A stretch of DNA of 64,000 nucleotides from Macrostomum hystrix (lineage: Eukaryota; Animalia; Platyhelminthes), in NCBI GenBank assembly GCA_950097015.1, contig CATNEN010000024.1:2914001-2978000 (forward strand), given 5' to 3'. Position 1 is the stretch's first letter. Each line of letters opens with the position of its first letter. Below, in pieces: positions 40,190-48,124 of this stretch. A program made the position numbers and the translations under genes. Under the pieces are notes generated by a model. The model was not told where the DNA came from, ran no database searches, and saw only the letters and a list, made by a program, of their open reading frames with translations.

Positions 40190-43100
40190 TCAAGAAGGCT
40201 GCTCTGCTGTCATTGTTCGGAAGTTGGTCGGTGTGAGGCAGTAGATCTGAAATTCAATTTTCAAAGATCCTTGTTTGTTAATTATGTGGCTGGTTAACTT
40301 GCATTGAAATAGAGCAGCTCGCCTTATCTGTGGGAGCAACCAACATCTCTGCAGGTGGCATAGCGATGACAAATCGATGATTCTTGGCACCTGGCTTTGT
40401 CACCTGCAAACGGGAAATGCCGATGCAGACAGACTCAAGTCGATCCAGACACCTGGTGGCCAGATCACGCCACTGGCAGCCACCTGTGCCCTGGAAGAAC
40501 AGGTATGGCGTTTGGCAGATCAGGCTAGTCTGAGATTAGTGGAGTGACTGATGAAGAGATTAGTGGAGTGACTGATGAAGAGATTAGTGGAGTGACTGAT
40601 GAAGAGATTAGTGGAGTGACTGATGAAGAGATTAGTGGAGTGACTGATGAAGAGATTAGTGGAGTGACTGATGAAGAGATTAGTGGAGTGACTGATGAAG
40701 AGATTAGTGGAGTGACTGATGAAGAGATTAGTGGAGTGAATGATGAAGAGATTAGTGGAGTGACTGATGAAGAGATTAGTGGAGTGACTGATGAAGAGAT
40801 TAGTGGAGTGAATGATGAAGAGATTAGTGGAGTGACTGATGAAGAGATTAGTGGAGTGACTGATGAAGAGATTAGCGGAGTGAATGATGAAGAGATTAGT
40901 GGAGTGACTGATGAAGAGATTAGTGGAGTGACTGATGAAGAGATTAGTGAAGAAGACACGGAGATACGGAGTCGAGGAAGCTGCAAAATGGACTTCAATC
41001 GACTACCAACCTCAATCTCATAGAGACGCCGCAGAGGTGGGTCGCGCACGCTGAACAAGCGAATTTCGCTGCGCAGATGCGGCAAATTGGAGCCGGCCTC
41101 GCTGCTCTGTCGGTAGAGCCGCGGCCTCACTAATCGATTTGTCTGCTCAGGCGACATAAAATGAAATCCCTGCTCGTTTAGGTTGAACTCCAGGTCATCC
41201 GAGTCCACGGTAGTTAGGATTGTTCGCAGGAAGTTAAGCGCCGGCTCATTAAAGTAGATCTGTTTGAAAAGTAGATAGGATTTACAAGGATTTACAAGGA
41301 TTTACAAGCTAACTACCGTTCAATTTGAAAGTATGGGATGATTAGCAGGGGTTACTGGCAGAGCGCTCTAACGCGCCAAAGGTCCTGAGCTCAATTCCAC
41401 GGAGAGGCCACATTCATTTGGGGTGTAGACGCGCAGAGAAGGCTTGGGGGCTTGTCTTGCAATTCACGCCCTTGAAGGCCAACCTCCAAGGCACAGTGAG
41501 AGTGAGTGAGAGTGTACAGTGCCTGATGATTAGAAAGTCAGGGCAGATGTACAACTGTGTGAGCGTATGGCAGCGTGCAGTATCTGTGTGCGTGTGTGCT
41601 CAGGAGTCAGCTTAATTGGCAGAACTGCAACCTCACTGGCTGGGGATCTAGTGTCACCAAATGATGTGTGAGTGCCCACACAGCGCTCCTGCATATATTA
41701 TTATGATTATTATATGAAGAAAGGCACAATGGCAGATTTAAAAGCTGGATCACAAGAATTTCCGGTTTACCGTAGTAGCTATGGAACCGAGCAAGCTGAG
41801 GTACAATGTCCTCCCAGTAGCAAAAGCTTGCGTCATAAAAGGCTCCTCGACTTCCATTTCGTCATCCTGATCCAGATACTCAATGGAGCCGACACTGTTC
41901 AGCTCGGTCACGATGTGTATGACGTCTCCAAGTCGACGCCCAGTCTCCGGGTGTCGCATTGTTTTGATGTTCAGCGTGCATAGGACGGTCTCGCGGTCCA
42001 CCTGCGCGTTTTCCTGCAGCGAATTGGCTTTTGGGGATAGAATGACGCAGCAGTCGACGTACTCGATGTTGATCGCTTTGAGGTTCGCGCGGTTCAGCGT
42101 GGACCCATTCAGCGCGTATATACTAGGAAAGTTCTGAATGACGCTCCACTCACGGAAGATGAGATCGATGTTACCGATAAAGACAATATCCTTAAGCTCT
42201 TCTTTGGGTATCGTGCTAGCTCTGAGGGGCATTAGGAATGAGGTGATGTTGAGCGTTATGTCTGGTCGCTTCTCCACAATGCACACCACAATGTGATTGC
42301 GGAACTGGTAGCGCTGGTGGTTGCTGAGCATCACGGTGCTTGCCGGCCGGTTCGAGACCCAATGAAAGTAGCCGCTTGAGTCAAGGGTCAGCTCCACTGT
42401 ATCCTCTGCTTTCAACTTCTGCTGGTCTCCTGACCTGGAATATGCGGGGAAACCAGAGGGCCTTAGAAGGTGTATAATTCTACTAAATGTGATATTTTAT
42501 TGAAATCAGAATGCATCTTCTAAAATGACTCACGATTCACTTTGTGAGGGCAGTTGAGCTGCAGCAAGACTAGTTTGCCGACTGACAAACCTATCTAAAA
42601 TTGTAATCGGGAAAACCTTAGAATACAATGTTACCTAGCTAAATAATCGTCACACAATTTTTTTGGTGAAGCGGTGATTCGCAGAGCGGTAACACGTCCA
42701 ACTCTTGCACCGAGGTCCTTGAGCTCGAATGCACGGCTAGGCGCTACATTCATCTGGGGTTCAGCCGCGGAGAGAAGGCTTTGGGAGCTAGTCGCGTAAT
42801 TTACGCTCATAAGGGCCAACCCCCAAGGCACAATGAGAGTGTACACTGCCTGATCATGAGAGATTCAGGGCAGATGTACACACATATGTGAGGGTTGGGT
42901 TCTGAAATTGAAATACCTGAAATTGATGGGTTCGACTCCGCCGCGAAACTGTGCGCCTGCCTTTGAGTCGCTTCTGGACCCCGCCTCCATTCTTCATCGC
43001 CATCCTCCTCCAGCTCCTGCCGAGCCTGCTGACAGATTCTCTTATTTCTTGAACAATTATTGTTGTCGCGCAACACCAGGTCGTTGTGCCGTTGCATTGC

Positions 43101-46100
43101 GAAGTAGGCCTCCGCTGCTGCAGTCTGCGTTAAGTCCTCTGAACTTAGCCGCAGATAGGACACTCTGAGTGCATCATGGTAGGATTTTTAAGTACATTTA
43201 GATTATTTATATCAATAGGAAATCATCATTTGCTTTGCTCTGAAATTTCCCCTTCCCCGAGAATTACTTTTACTGCACCCGAACGGAGCAAAGAAAGCAC
43301 AGCTCCGTCTACATCCGTCTAGATCCGCCTAGAGGTGACCACCGAAGTCGGAAATGATCCAGACACATTCGGATGACGTGCTGATAAAGTTTGAAGGCCT
43401 GGCAAGGCAGCACTGAGGCGCTGTGCAAAGTCATGAATAGGGGTATATGAAATACACTTAGCTCTTATAGGAAAAACTGACCTTCATCCAGAACCATTGA
43501 ATATCTTGACGATTTAGTGACGAGCTGGCGACTTGATTTTTATTTCACAAGTGGGCGCAACAAAAATTTGGCCCGTGTTCTTGAGTTTCCTGTGCTTGCA
43601 TTACTCCATTCGGGTGCAGCATAAATAATTGTCAGCGGTGGGAGGGAATCCCAGCCTTGGTATAATCCCAGTTGGCGGCAAAATGCCTTTGTAGTCCTAC
43701 TGTAAACTCACTCTTTTGCATACTTTCTGTCTTTCGCAATGACAAACGCTTCCATTGTGTAAACGTCAATTATAAAATTGGAGCCTGGATTGATGATAGT
43801 CTGCGGAGAGTCGTTCTCAATGCTGTTGTCGACGTCGCTGTCGCCTCTCGGGTTGACAATCTGGACGGCCAGAAGCATGATCTCAAGCAGGTCGTAGCAC
43901 AACCGGCAGGCCTGCTGAAATGTCAGGCCGTTGAACAGCGGCGAGAATTTGACTTTGTAGAACTCAAACTGAGCACCCTGCAGGTATTCGTTCTCCCAGC
44001 TTCCATCCTCTTCCTTCATCGGTCGAAATGATCGCAGGGTGAGCAGATTGCCCAGCAAGGTTGATACACCGGGAGCTAGGCAGCTTTGGGCCAGCACGCC
44101 GTACTTCATCTCGTTGATGCACAATGCTTGGTCGCCGTGCGCGGCGCTCCAGTCCGGTATGTTGCGCAGGTAGGTCTTGCTGCGGTACAGATGCAGCTGC
44201 ACTATTATGCGTATGCACGGGCAATAATCTTTGATTGCGATCACTCGCATGATGTTTTTCAGGTCTTCGTCCTCCGGATCTTTGGCCAGGCCGTCCGTTA
44301 GTATGATGGTGGCGGTGGCCGCCTTCAGCTCGGCGCGTTTCAAATCTCGGAGCGTCATTACGTTGCCGTGCAGGTAGGTGACGTAGAGCTCCCGGGTCTT
44401 CAAAAGGGCCCGCATTTCAGCGCTCGGCTCTTCTCTGGATTGGGAGTCATTGGGGGATTTGGAGCTTCGATGGAAGATTTAGGACAACTAATTCCTAAAA
44501 TCTCTTAAAAGGACAGGGCGGATTTAGAAGGACAGCTAGGGTAGATTTAGAAGGACAGGGTGGATTTAGAAGGTCAGGGTGGGTTTAGAAGACAGGGCGA
44601 GTTTAGAAGGATAGGGCAGATTAAAAGTTTAAAATTTAGAATACAGACGAGAATGTAGCAGTTTAGGAGGATAATGTGGACTTTAGAGGCAGAACTTACT
44701 CCCCCAACATCGCCACAAACTGTCGCTTGTTCTCCGCCCGTCCTTCGTGGTAGAAATCTTCAAAGAAGGTCTCGACAGTTGTTACGTCAAAGATTCCGGC
44801 GAGAACGACATGTCTGAAAATGCAGGCTTCATTTTACTGTCGTTGTTTTTCTTTGCCTAAAGTGTAAGAAGCCCATAAGAAAAAATGACCCTCACTTTCT
44901 TCCATGCATGAGGTGGATCTTGTTTCGTCTGTACTTCTTACTCTCAGTCAGTATTTCTGACATCTCCGGTATTATACTAGTAAAGAGGCCCTGAAATAAA
45001 AAAATGTTTTTAAGTTTGACCAGGGAATGGGGCTACTACAACAGCGGGCTCGCCAAACAGTGATAGGTAGCTCACCAGTGCAAACACGACAAAGATAATT
45101 ATAAAGAATTTTCCCAGAACAGTCTTGGGAGTGTAATCACCGTAGCCCACAGTGCTCATAGTGATCAGCATGGTGTAAAAGCAGACGTGATAGTCCAAAA
45201 ACGATGAGGTCAGTGAGCCGCCGTCCTCAGTCCAGAAATCGCCAATTGATTCGATCTAAATGTTTTATTTCATATTTCATGGGGTACGATGCCTTTTTAA
45301 GCACGGGTGTTCTAATGGGTGTGTAATGCGCGTAGTTTGGGGGAAGGGTGAGCCAAGGGGTGCCCGTGCCCTCCTCCAATCAGATGGCTAAAGCCCATCA
45401 AAACCCAGGTGCACATCCAAATCCATGGTGGCACACCCAAATCCATTTTGGCACTCCTAACTCCATGGTGGCTTTCCTAACTCCATGGTGGCACTCCTAA
45501 CTCCATGTTGGCACTCCCAAATTAATGTTGGCTGTGTCACCTGTGTTAATGGACAAACCATCTCTGATTTCAAAGCAAATGAATCAATAGGAAGCACCAA
45601 CCCGCTGATAGAATCCTGCGCAAGCCAGCCAGGTGATGATGATCTTCATGAGCAGTCTCATCAGGCGAATGTCTCGCTCACCGCTGAGAATACGGCTGTA
45701 GATCAGAGCATTTATTAAGAATTTTAGACCGCCCAGCCTTGCGAACTGGAAAACTGGAATTTTGTGACAACTTTGCGCAATAAATAGTGTTTTATAAAAT
45801 TACTAAGACCAACACACGGGTGAGTGGCAGAACGACTAACGCGCTTGCGTCTTGCAGTAACGTCCCTGAGCTCGATTCCGTGGCGAGGCCACATTTATTG
45901 GGCGCAGCCGCGGATCAGAGAAGGCTTGGGGGCTTGTCGTGCAATTTACGCCCTTGAGGGCCAACCTGCAAGGCACAGTTAAATGTACATTGCCTGACGA
46001 TGAGAAAGTCAGGGCTGATGTACACACCTGTGTGAGTGTATACCTGCGTATGGTATCTGTGTGCTTATGTGCTCAGGAGTCAGCGAAATTGGCCTCCTCG

Positions 46101-48124
46101 CTGTCTGTTGGTCTAGTGTCACCAAATGATGTGCCGTTGCCCGCAGCCCTCTGCAAATATTAAGAAGAATAATGCTAGAAATACCACACTCACCGATCAT
46201 GTATTTGTCCATGAAGTACATGATGAAGGAAGGTATAAGGGTGACATGATCGGCGATGGTCTCCAGGGAAAGGAAAAAGGTAACCTTGGAGTCGCTGGCT
46301 ATGATCTGAAAATTTGTCATGCGGTTTATTTTTACTTTATTCTTTGTTACTTTACATTGAGGCCAGAAAACTAAACTGACATTCATTTCAGAAAAATAGA
46401 CTTAAGAATAACTCTTTTGACTGTCGGGCCTCATTTCAGAAGCATCTAACTATGTTCAGCCTGTAGACCACGCGTTTATGCTCATTGGCACAGCTTCCAA
46501 TTAACATTTTCCTGTCGAAGAACAAAAAAACGGTGGGATCTCACTCGACAAATGAACACCAGGGCGTAGAACACGTTGATGGCAAAGTCAACGTGGATTG
46601 AGTTGAACTGACTGCGCGAGTGGCAAGACTGCAGGCTCTTGGTGGTACCATGATCTGTCGTCGCCGAGAATGCGTACGTCATGTAGACATAGACTATAAA
46701 AGAGGCCACAACACACATGGAGTATATCGCGAGCTGGAAAGAATGAGATGTCGATTCTCAGTATTCGATTCAGTAGGTAATAATAATAATAATTGCAGGA
46801 GGGCTGTGGGCAATAGCACATCATTTAGTGACAGTTGACCCGCAGCCAGTGAGGAGGCAATTCTACCCATTCCGCTGACTCCTGAGCACACACTCACACA
46901 GACACCGTACGCAGGCTCTTCACACAGTCTAACAATCTCACCGTGCACTTTCACTGAACCTAGAAGGTTGGCCCTCAAGAGCGTAATTTGCAGAGACCCT
47001 CAAGCCCTTTTTCCGTGGCAGCGCCCGAAATTAGTGTAGCCTCGCCGCGGAATTGAGCTTAGGAGCCTTGGCGCAAATGGCAAACGCCTTAACTGTTGAA
47101 AGACCACGGCGGTATTTCAACTACCCATATTTTTAATTCGTCTGTACCACCCAAAATATTCAACCCATCGCCATGAAAAGCCAGATCACGGGCTTGCATT
47201 GCCCGCTCTATCCGATTAAACAGCTTCCAGAATCACAAACATCAGCAATTTCGACATATTCAAAGATTCTCGTCTGGGTGTCGGGTGTCAAAAACCACCA
47301 ATATATTACCACATCGTTTTTCTGCTAGCAAAATTTTGAGAGAAAACGAGGTCGGCTATAATTGTTGATCATATTGTATTGATTGTATTGATTGATTGCA
47401 TTGTTATATTACTGAACCACTATGTATTCGGCATAGAGGTTACACAGAGCAATGTTAGTTGTCCTTGTCACCAGGGTCTTCGACAAGAATCGCTGAATTA
47501 CCTGAATATCTCATAGATGCTGACGTCGGGCGAATTTGAATGTTAGTACACCGTAAAAGGCAGAAAATGTTGATCCATATGGTTGACTTTCACGAAAATC
47601 GGTCATTCGGTTTGGGAGATGTGGTGAAAGACAGTGGATATTTGAAATACCCCCGTGTGTCTTCCCCCAAAGAGGAAAAAAGCAGGGTCTTTCTACTATT
47701 TACCGCTCTGGCACTCACCTCCTTATTCAGTAGGTTATATACATGTGTAACCATGCTAACAAGCCTTCGAGTTTCGGTAATTGGTCGGTAAATTCGACTC
47801 GAACTAAAGTCACCAACATCGATTGCTCACAAGTATTTTGCCAGCATTGTTGGCTCCTTTCACAAGCGCCATGCACTCCAGGTGGATCCGAGTGTGCAGC
47901 GACGGACTGTGGCTCTTGCTGAACAGCTTCTGCCTCTTGGCATCGTCGATCTGCTTGTTCCGGATGGAGCAAGCGTTTCGGATCTGTTGGGCAGCCGTCG
48001 CGATGAGCAGAGCTGTCAGGTAGGTCCCGGCAGCCGAGCCGACGACGATCTGCCACAGGGTGGTCTGGCAGTAGACTGTCGTGTTATTGGCCGTGACAGA
48101 CAGGTTCCCCGCCGAGCTCGACAT
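40190..48124 (-). CDS. Divergent Slo1/BK (slowpoke)-family large-conductance K+ channel alpha subunit (~1079 aa, 13 exons)
   Basis: Exons (-): 48124-47831 (S0), 46733-46545 (S1-S2), 46305-46194 (S3), 45753-45602 (S4-S5), 45255-45076 (pore TMSTVGYGD, S6), 44990-44896, 44813-44700, 44434-43712 (RCK1: DPEDEDLKNIMRVIAIKDY, AQSCLAPG), 43164-42917, 42429-41771 (RCK2: NHIVVCI, FLMPLRAS, Ca-bowl region; acceptor position slightly uncertain), 41259-41011, 40490-40323, 40246-40190. The sum is 3240 nt = 1080 codons. Confidence 0.9.
40530..40950. repeat. Intronic minisatellite (Slo gene), 24-bp unit TGATGAAGAGATTAGTGGAGTGAC
   Basis: Explains the VTDEEISG and SSVTPLIS ORFs. Confidence 0.97.
41350..41715 (+). 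mobile_element. SINE family A copy, Slo intron
   Basis: Full head, body and ATT-rich tail. Confidence 0.85.
42680..42895 (+). mobile_element. SINE family A copy (5' part), Slo intron
   Basis: GAGCTCGAATGC..GCGGAGAGAAGGCTTTGGG..CAGGGCAGATGTACAC. Confidence 0.8.
45820..46165 (+). mobile_element. SINE family A copy, Slo intron 3
   Basis: Full-length match. Confidence 0.87.
46785..47095 (-). mobile_element. SINE family A copy, inverted, Slo intron 1
   Basis: The reverse complement reads head (GCTCAATTCCGCGGCGAGG), body and tail (GCCCACAGCCCTCCTGCAATTATTATT). Confidence 0.87.
47110..47660. mobile_element. Family C element copy, Slo intron 1
   Basis: Same left arm, centre (TTGTCACCAGGGTCTTCGACAAGAA) and right arm ending GGATATTTGAAATACCC. 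Confidence 0.75.

Follow-up and report, generated by a model that had tools for sequence, protein, structure and literature searches.

A predicted BK-type potassium channel with a charge-poor S4 segment in the flatworm Macrostomum hystrix

What can a BK-type potassium channel do with membrane voltage when a single arginine of its S4 stripe is left? The question is raised by a gene in a stretch of 64,000 nucleotides from Macrostomum hystrix (GenBank assembly GCA_950097015.1, contig CATNEN010000024.1, positions 2,914,001 to 2,978,000), which we refer to as the window. The gene is an intact, multi-exon, Slo1/BK-like gene on the minus strand, from about 48290 to about 40220 of the window. A preliminary description of the window had read it as a Slo-family channel whose S4 has lost its principal gating charge, and had predicted weak voltage dependence. 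As a whole, this interpretation is partly supported by our analysis. We consider it probable that the gene encodes an expressed and maintained K+ channel subunit of BK architecture and of an old lineage, in which the S4 stripe is cut to R210 (human BK numbering throughout), the residual voltage dependence is shallow, and opening comes mainly from the gating ring.

In order of translation, the exons encode an S0-like helix, S1-S2, S3, S4-S5, the pore with the TVGYGD filter and S6, RCK1, a linker, RCK2 with an altered calcium bowl, and a conserved C-terminus. The reading frame is unbroken across all exons, the splice sites are GT-AG, and the phases are continuous. The window exons were searched singly, and the Macrostomum lignano orthologue BOX15_Mlig015491g1 (P0158) served as the full-length stand-in for searches, fold modelling and the tree. 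The shorter form of this protein, A0A1I8H8F3 (P0001), is named 'Maxi K channel' and is the top match of an exhaustive protein search with the RCK1 exon, at 83% identity (the second best match has 43%). All window exons map to P0158 with 64-90% identity per exon and with no stop or frameshift.

The S4 segment was compared with known BK channels in two alignments. In a HMMER alignment with Aplysia BK (PDB 5tj6), P0158 runs free of gaps from S2 through S5; at Aplysia R196, R199, R202 and D208, the counterparts of human R207, R210, R213 and E219, it has Q, R, G and N, respectively. The S4 core, VFQFARLGGLKFL, is identical between the window gene and P0158. The three window exons were also entered one at a time into a MAFFT alignment, which shows Q at R207, R at R210, G at R213, K at position 215 and N at E219; the codon map gives the same S4 states. 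Outside S4, the alignment places M at D133, D at D153, R at R167, S at E180 with an E two residues later, and D at D186. The window gene does not carry the canonical Slo1 S4 signature (R207, R210, R213, E/D219). The preliminary description had given the same four S4 states, an S3-S4 alignment to Slo1 without gaps, and a retained S2 Asp and Arg, S3 Asp and TVGYGD filter, all of which are borne out; the displaced acid at E180 and the M at D133 are charge changes beyond those it listed.

Judged by its sequence, the window gene is a Slo1/BK-like channel, in agreement with the Slo-family membership proposed earlier. Searched against PDB, the main RCK1 exon matches Aplysia and human Slo1 with E-values of 1e-52 to 1e-47 (best, Aplysia BK at 8.5e-52), Slo3 at 2.9e-34, and Slo2 chains at 7e-10 to 2e-9. 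This exon carries the Pfam domains BK_channel_a (PF03493, 2.1e-26) and Slo-like_RCK (PF22614, 1.4e-14), and PF21014 is present in P0158, the protein to which the RCK2 and C-terminal exons align; together these give the tandem RCK1/RCK2 arrangement. The filter reads MSTVGYGD, with the TVGYGD of Slo1-like channels. Slo2 membership was ruled out by the RCK1 scores (~1e-9 against 8.5e-52 for Slo1). Slo3 membership was ruled out by the weaker PDB score and by the tree described below, in which Slo3 representatives cluster apart, with vertebrate Slo1-like sequences, at 100/100. Pfam returned nothing for the short S1-S4 exons, and the S4 exon alone matched no PDB sequence even at E = 10, these queries being too short.

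The fold of the membrane part was modelled with AlphaFold2 (AF2) on the first 345 residues of the M. lignano orthologue (mean pLDDT 83.8, pTM 0.82). The model contains S4 as one continuous helix running through its two glycines. A helix at residues 19-64, together with S1-S6, aligns over ~305-310 columns to the transmembrane (TM) domains of Slo1, which gives the orthologue the extra S0 helix and the non-domain-swapped S1-S4 of Slo1-like channels; in exon 1 of the window gene, a Cys/Trp motif is likewise followed by a hydrophobic helix, an arrangement shared with canonical paralogues. When the TM model was searched with Foldseek, the 46 best matches were all Slo1 TM domains, with a TM-score of ~0.72.

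The ligand sites of the cytosolic part are altered as well. The calcium bowl reads DQDDEMEVEE, compared with the canonical DQDDDDDPD, and the one-residue difference in length means that the key aspartates are not assignable with certainty. RCK1 has T in place of the Mg-site residue E399 and Y in place of Q397.

The gene is live: it is transcribed, correctly spliced and selectively maintained, as indicated by spliced transcripts, a continuous reading frame and purifying selection. Transcripts were sought among the contigs of four public runs from one study, which carry no RNA label. About 40% of the sequence words of a 4.6-kb stretch are present in the four runs. The contigs contain pieces without introns that begin or end at each predicted junction, including 45753 and 45602, with 0-3 mismatches per contig. 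The acceptor at 45753, which had been flagged for confirmation, and the S4 exon itself are thus seen in spliced form. The piece 45602-45753 directly adjoins 45075-45255 in all four runs. In three contigs exactly 112 letters separate the piece 46545-46733 from the S4 piece, and in a fourth 148 letters (112 + 36) precede the S4 piece. Pieces 47831-48281/48291 are joined straight to 46733, so that the transcripts extend at least to 48291. In the assembly searched, the S4 exon of the window gene has one genomic locus only; therefore, these contigs must represent transcripts and not a retrocopy. Compared with the M. lignano genomic copy, the proportion of nonsynonymous differences (pN) is 0.11 and that of synonymous differences (pS) is 0.745, which is saturated; for the S4 exon alone, pN is 0.124 and pS is 0.67.

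These results bear on whether the unusual S4 might be an artefact, with the gene being a pseudogene in decay, its splice model being wrong, or a canonical S4 exon having been overlooked. The lack of Pfam or PDB matches for the S4 exon alone and the repeat-rich introns would fit such an explanation. We regard it as highly improbable, given the intact frame in all exons, the spliced transcripts in four samples, and pN far below pS, which together exclude a pseudogene. The junction between the S3 and S4 exons has the acceptor attccag/TTTTCC on the S4 side (slash at the exon edge) and the donor ATCG/gtgagt on the S3 side, and the split codon G+TT encodes Val, giving the spliced peptide ...FMDKYMI-V-FQFARLGGLKFLINALIYSRIL...; the M. 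lignano protein models carry the same junction. The other ends of the two exons are the S3 acceptor ttttcag/ATC and the S4-S5 donor CGG/gttggt. An alternative acceptor AG at 45747-45746, 8 nt downstream, was excluded, as it shifts the frame into a stop. A tblastn search of the window with canonical BK paralogues found no canonical S4-like segment anywhere in it.

To place the window gene among its relatives, we searched the M. hystrix assembly (220 Mb, 42 contigs) and found at least 11 Slo1-like loci. Four of these are intronless, full-length canonical BK open reading frames (ORFs) of 1074-1245 amino acids, with the S4 pattern W-I-G-L-R-x-T-R-A-L-R, an acid at 219 and a complete calcium bowl. 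RxxRxxR is also retained in at least three other paralogues with few introns, on genome pieces C30, C11 and C31, which brings the loci with this motif to at least seven. Only two other loci (on C38 and C3) share the S4 exon of the window gene, at 59% identity; their S4 segments read FQYARLVGLRF and FQFARINGLKY. M. lignano, a separate species of the genus with roughly 80% protein identity, has one orthologue for each of the three charge-poor M. hystrix genes. These six Macrostomum sequences all have Q207, R210, G213, K/R215 and N219, and differ at position 212. This constancy marks the charge-poor S4 as a conserved design and not a product of decay.

The presence of so many Slo1-like genes in one genome raises the possibility that the window gene encodes a modulatory subunit, which would not form homotetramers and would instead co-assemble with canonical BK subunits and dilute or retune their voltage sensing. 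Partners are available in the form of the other Slo1-like loci, including the four intronless canonical copies, and heteromers are known elsewhere in the Slo family. However, the pore, the filter, RCK1 and RCK2 are all undamaged and strongly constrained, as for a self-sufficient channel, and the TM domain is only ~30% identical to those of the canonical copies. We consider a purely modulatory role improbable.

The three charge-poor genes also have relatives outside Macrostomum. When a trematode relative was used as the query of a word search, it led to orthologues in Clonorchis, Schistosoma, Trichobilharzia, Paragonimus, Opisthorchis, Fasciola and Heterobilharzia, and a cestode member (Hymenolepis) was found through a cluster look-up. 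The motifs GDFW (after S5) and GYGDY (at the filter) are common to the Macrostomum genes, the trematode and cestode members, and a protein of the nemertean Tubulanus. In a careful maximum-likelihood tree of 31 rows under a site-heterogeneous model, the Macrostomum trio groups with the cestode and trematode sequences (support 96/92), the flatworm group joins Tubulanus (99/97), and these together join two paralogues of the annelid Owenia (86/90). Canonical Slo1, represented by wasp, oyster and the intronless M. hystrix copies, forms a separate clade (96/96), and the window gene lies outside this canonical orthogroup. None of the 10 clade members has R213 (replaced by G, G, G, N, C, S, C, G, I and L), and all flatworm members also lack R207 (Q, N or G instead).

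These sequence comparisons suggest that the charge-poor S4 is the mark of an old flatworm paralogue lineage and not of the window gene alone, and that the lineage is probably spiralian in extent. The trait is not special to the window gene: it also occurs in the two paralogues, the M. lignano orthologues, and the cestode, trematode, nemertean and annelid genes. In trematode orthologues (P0220, P0124, P0218), N stands at the S2 position of D153, besides the loss of R207 and R213 (N207 and C213 in a trematode orthologue), and trematode sensors are therefore even more depleted than those of Macrostomum.

A wider alignment of 34 Slo1-like TM domains, from sponges, a ctenophore, a cnidarian, protostomes, and vertebrate Slo1 and Slo3, puts the S4 states in perspective. 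All 34 sequences have arginine at the position of R210. At that of R213, many lineages have another residue, namely Q, Y, H, I, L, G, S, C, N or W. Some of these replacements lie in Slo1-like paralogues outside the clade of the window gene, namely Q in a coral, Y in a tardigrade, and W in sequences that group with a sponge protein.

The consequences of such replacements have been studied by mutagenesis in mammalian and Aplysia BK. Ma et al. (2006, PMC2151507) found R213 to be the sole S4 residue whose mutation cuts gating charge, alongside D153, R167 and D186, and found that the activated sensor becomes more stable, by 3-7 kcal/mol, when R207 or R210 is neutralised. Gating-current work from 2022 (PMC9231616) assigns charge to both R210 and R213. 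The earlier statement that R213 is the main S4 gating charge thus agrees with the first study, while the second divides this charge between R213 and R210. In gating currents of human BK (Carrasquel-Ursulaez et al.), the midpoint of the charge-voltage (Q-V) curve is +394 mV for R213Q and -342 mV for R210Q, and either mutation significantly lowers the gating charge zQ. The human Q-V curve shifts to negative voltages upon neutralisation of R207, E219, D186 or E180 (strongly for R207Q and E219) and to positive voltages upon neutralisation of D133, D153 or R167. In Aplysia, where R196, R199 and R202 correspond to human R207, R210 and R213 (Contreras et al.), mutants of the R207 and R210 equivalents lock the sensor in the activated state, while the mutant of the R213 equivalent locks it in the resting state and gives no macroscopic current. 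Mutations of R213 virtually abolish activation by Mg2+, which binds at E374/E399 and acts electrostatically on R213.

Based on these data, we propose the following working of the channel. R213 would have been replaced early in the lineage (by G here), and R207 was also replaced in flatworms (by Q here). The acidic partners D133 and E219 are neutral (M and N) in the Macrostomum genes. The sensor would still fold as a BK-type S1-S4 bundle and would carry roughly half, or less, of the gating charge of BK, which at roughly 0.6 e is itself small. Since R210 is kept, is invariant and is itself a published gating charge, the S4 sensor is depleted but not emptied. Mg2+ would not act through R213. Opening of the presumed BK-type tetrameric K+ channel would be driven mainly by the cytosolic gating ring, in which the calcium bowl is partly kept. 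The substitutions appear to pull in different directions: Q207 and N219 mimic laboratory neutralisations that bias the sensor to the activated state, G213 mimics one that locks it in the resting state, and M133 would favour the resting state. In combination they may compensate, pinning the sensor near one state. Because the single mutants pull in opposite ways, the net set-point of Q207, G213 and N219 is not readable from sequence. Weak voltage dependence of the window channel, as predicted earlier, is a plausible prediction.

Several points weigh against this proposal. R210, a gating charge in the 2022 study (PMC9231616), is retained, as are D153, R167 and D186. An additional K/R is conserved at position 215 in the Macrostomum genes. 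Moreover, BK channels have an intrinsic voltage dependence of the pore. Because of these three features, the loss of voltage dependence could be milder than we propose. The effects of single mutations in mammalian and Aplysia channels need not add up in a protein whose TM domain is only ~27% identical. With regard to the gene model, the S3 exon is supported in transcripts by its length alone (112 letters) and not by its letters, and the transcript evidence comes from unlabelled runs of a single study. With regard to the lineage, the long flatworm stems (1.41 and 1.76) join in the tree, which carries a risk of long-branch attraction; evidence to the contrary comes from the shared motifs and from a branching order like that of the species.

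Taken further, the retained charges could mean that the sensor is fully competent, so that R210, together with D153, R167, D186 and K/R215, gives BK-like or otherwise substantial voltage dependence and the absence of R207 and R213 does no more than retune the midpoint. This would fit the role of the invariant R210 in gating-current measurements, the presence of K/R215 in all six Macrostomum sequences, and the many Slo1-like paralogues in other phyla that lack R213 yet are maintained. It is harder to reconcile with the significantly lower zQ of human R213Q and R210Q and with the absence of macroscopic current in the Aplysia R3Q mutant. Position 215 lies two residues beyond 213 and five beyond R210, off the helical stripe of R210 and R213, and it is not basic in the cestode, trematode and nemertean members. 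We note that a register shift, in which K/R215 and the acid at 182 would take the place of the R213/E180 pair, was considered and set aside, because S3 and S4 are antiparallel and a shift of two residues on both helices would separate the residues. Overall, a fully competent sensor seems unlikely to us.

The compensation suggested above may also be carried to the opposite extreme. Throughout a lineage that is platyhelminth-wide, and possibly spiralian, the sensor might have become a fixed, voltage-blind coupling module through compensated losses, of R207 with D133 and of R213 with E219, leaving only a structurally indispensable R210. The result would be a channel of the large-conductance type gated purely by cytosolic ligand. 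We entertain this idea tentatively, and continue to favour a depleted sensor with shallow residual voltage dependence.

How does such a channel compare with those already known? It resembles canonical Slo1/BK channels (KCNMA1, Drosophila slowpoke, Aplysia Slo1) in its S0-S6 topology, non-swapped sensor, TVGYGD filter, RCK1 and RCK2, and D153, R167, D186 and R210. It differs from them in Q207, G213, N219, M133, T at E399, the altered calcium bowl and the low identity of the TM domain. Close parallels are the engineered human R207Q, R213Q and E219 neutralisations and the Aplysia mutants R196Q and R202Q (PDB 9di8/9dic and 9dkf/9dkn), which are neutralisations of the same kinds at the same aligned positions; the shared Q makes the Aplysia R196Q structure the top PDB sequence match of the orthologue. 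The engineered mutants are single changes of opposite effect, whereas in the lineage of the window gene the changes are combined, ancient, and set in a divergent sensor.

Within the Slo family, Slo2.1 and Slo2.2 (KCNT2 and KCNT1) provide a precedent for a charge-poor S4: in Slo2.1 the net charge of S4 is 0, and its weak voltage dependence is independent of S1-S4 charges. Slo2 is a separate subfamily, to which the RCK1 exon is only distantly similar. If the effect is the same, the charge loss would have arisen independently. To our knowledge, Slo2 also lacks an S0 helix. Slo3 (KCNU1) is likewise a Slo1-derived paralogue with altered ligand sensing; vertebrate Slo3, however, retains R207, R210 and R213 and groups with vertebrate Slo1-like sequences. 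The M. lignano proteins and those annotated 'calcium-activated potassium channel subunit alpha-1' in Schistosoma, Clonorchis, Calicophoron and Hymenolepis belong to the same lineage, with an R210-only S4 and the GDFW and GYGDY motifs. Sequences of the lineage are thus already public, under automatic BK names only. Literature searches on flatworm, schistosome and Macrostomum BK/Slo paralogues returned only nematode SLO-1/emodepside work and nothing on the S4 or function of this lineage, which is weak evidence as subscription journals were thinly covered.

Table 1 Exons and S4 codons of the Slo1/BK-like gene (window positions)
Feature	Positions	Strand	Evidence
Exon 1, coding part: start codon, N-glycosylation-type motifs, Cys, S0 helix, S0-S1 linker	47831..48124	-	ORF and ATG; 64% identical to P0158 residues 2-97
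S1-S2 exon; D153 and R167 equivalents kept, D133 replaced by M	46545..46733	-	Contig pieces in 4 runs, GT-AG sites, residue table
S3 exon, 112 nt, phase 1 end; D186 equivalent kept, E180 column S with E two residues on	46194..46305	-	Splice sites; contig spacing; 84% identical to P0158
S4, S4-S5 linker and S5 exon, 152 nt	45602..45753	-	Contig pieces in 4 runs, codon map, ungapped HMMER alignment of orthologue to Aplysia BK
S4 codon Q (R207)	45748-45746	-	Codon map
S4 codon R (R210)	45739-45737	-	Codon map
S4 codon G (R213)	45730-45728	-	Codon map
S4 codon K (215)	45724-45722	-	Codon map
S4 codon N (E219)	45712-45710	-	Codon map
Turret, pore helix, TVGYGD filter, first half of S6; lineage motifs GDFW and GYGDY	45076..45255	-	Pfam Ion_trans_2 1.4e-10, contigs, motif screen
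Remainder of S6 and S6-RCK1 linker exon	44896..44990	-	Joint 44813/44896 and 94-95-letter contig gap; sites; match to P0158
Exon with RCK1 start	44700..44813	-	Contig pieces; match to P0158
Main RCK1 exon	43712..44434	-	Pfam BK_channel_a and Slo-like_RCK; PDB matches; contigs
RCK1-RCK2 linker exon	42917..43164	-	Joint 43164/43712 with GT..AG; contig pieces
Small linker exon	42534..42594	-	3' end set by 99-nt intron joint 42432/42532 (cut +2) in 4 runs; 5' end inferred from AG and phase
RCK2 exon, altered calcium bowl YLDQDDEMEVEEP	41771..42434	-	ORF; ~90% identical to P0158 over 204 codons
C-terminal exons, ~41259-41011, 40490-40314 and ~40249-40196; edges approximate	40220..41259	-	tblastn of P0158 and sequence context; outside contig comparison

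Several repeats were observed in the introns of the window gene. Inverted copies (83-86% complementary) of a dispersed repeat of ~330 bp lie at 45800-46151 and 46799-47100, in the introns flanking the S1-S2 and S3 exons, and sequence words of this repeat occur thousands deep in the transcript contigs. Exon skipping or back-splicing can be promoted by inverted repeats placed in introns in this way. The repeat is tRNA-like, and ARAGORN found no tRNA in it. A tandem array of a 20-bp unit (~7-8 copies, 45399-45553) lies in the intron between the S4-S5 and pore exons, and a long tandem repeat of SSVTPLISSS... units, at ~40530-41000 and open in two frames, is found in the intron that precedes the final coding exons.

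Elsewhere in the genome, the four intronless BK copies are located on C25 (L013 2227-5448), C1 (L014 6011-2787), C8 (L015 1572-5306) and C38 (L016 6210-2704), some with poly-Q tracts, and look like an unusual, retrogene-like expansion of Slo1. A minisatellite of ~2 kb (C38:7736500-7738600, minus strand), open in three frames with ESRLSTECYTH-type units, lies beside a BK paralogue.

The lineage of the window gene offers a natural, long-maintained combination of changes made singly in the laboratory: R210 is kept, R213 and E219 are neutral, and position 207 resembles R207Q. As a test case that nature provides for voltage sensing in BK channels, it may show what R210 alone might support and whether activating and resting-locking changes compensate. 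In the debate on whether the BK gating charge resides in R213 together with S2 and S3 charges or in R210 and R213 alone, the finding that R210 is invariant and R213 replaceable among the 34 sequences is a direct evolutionary datum. We believe the lineage to be of moderate interest for BK biophysics, as a natural multi-site neutralisation, and of some interest for parasitology, given its schistosome and tapeworm genes. The gating of the 'BK alpha' genes of Schistosoma, Clonorchis, Fasciola and Hymenolepis, and their use as drug targets, should not be assumed to be mammalian-like. If these channels were indeed voltage-blind, schistosomes and tapeworms would possess a channel with a pharmacology distinct from that of host BK.

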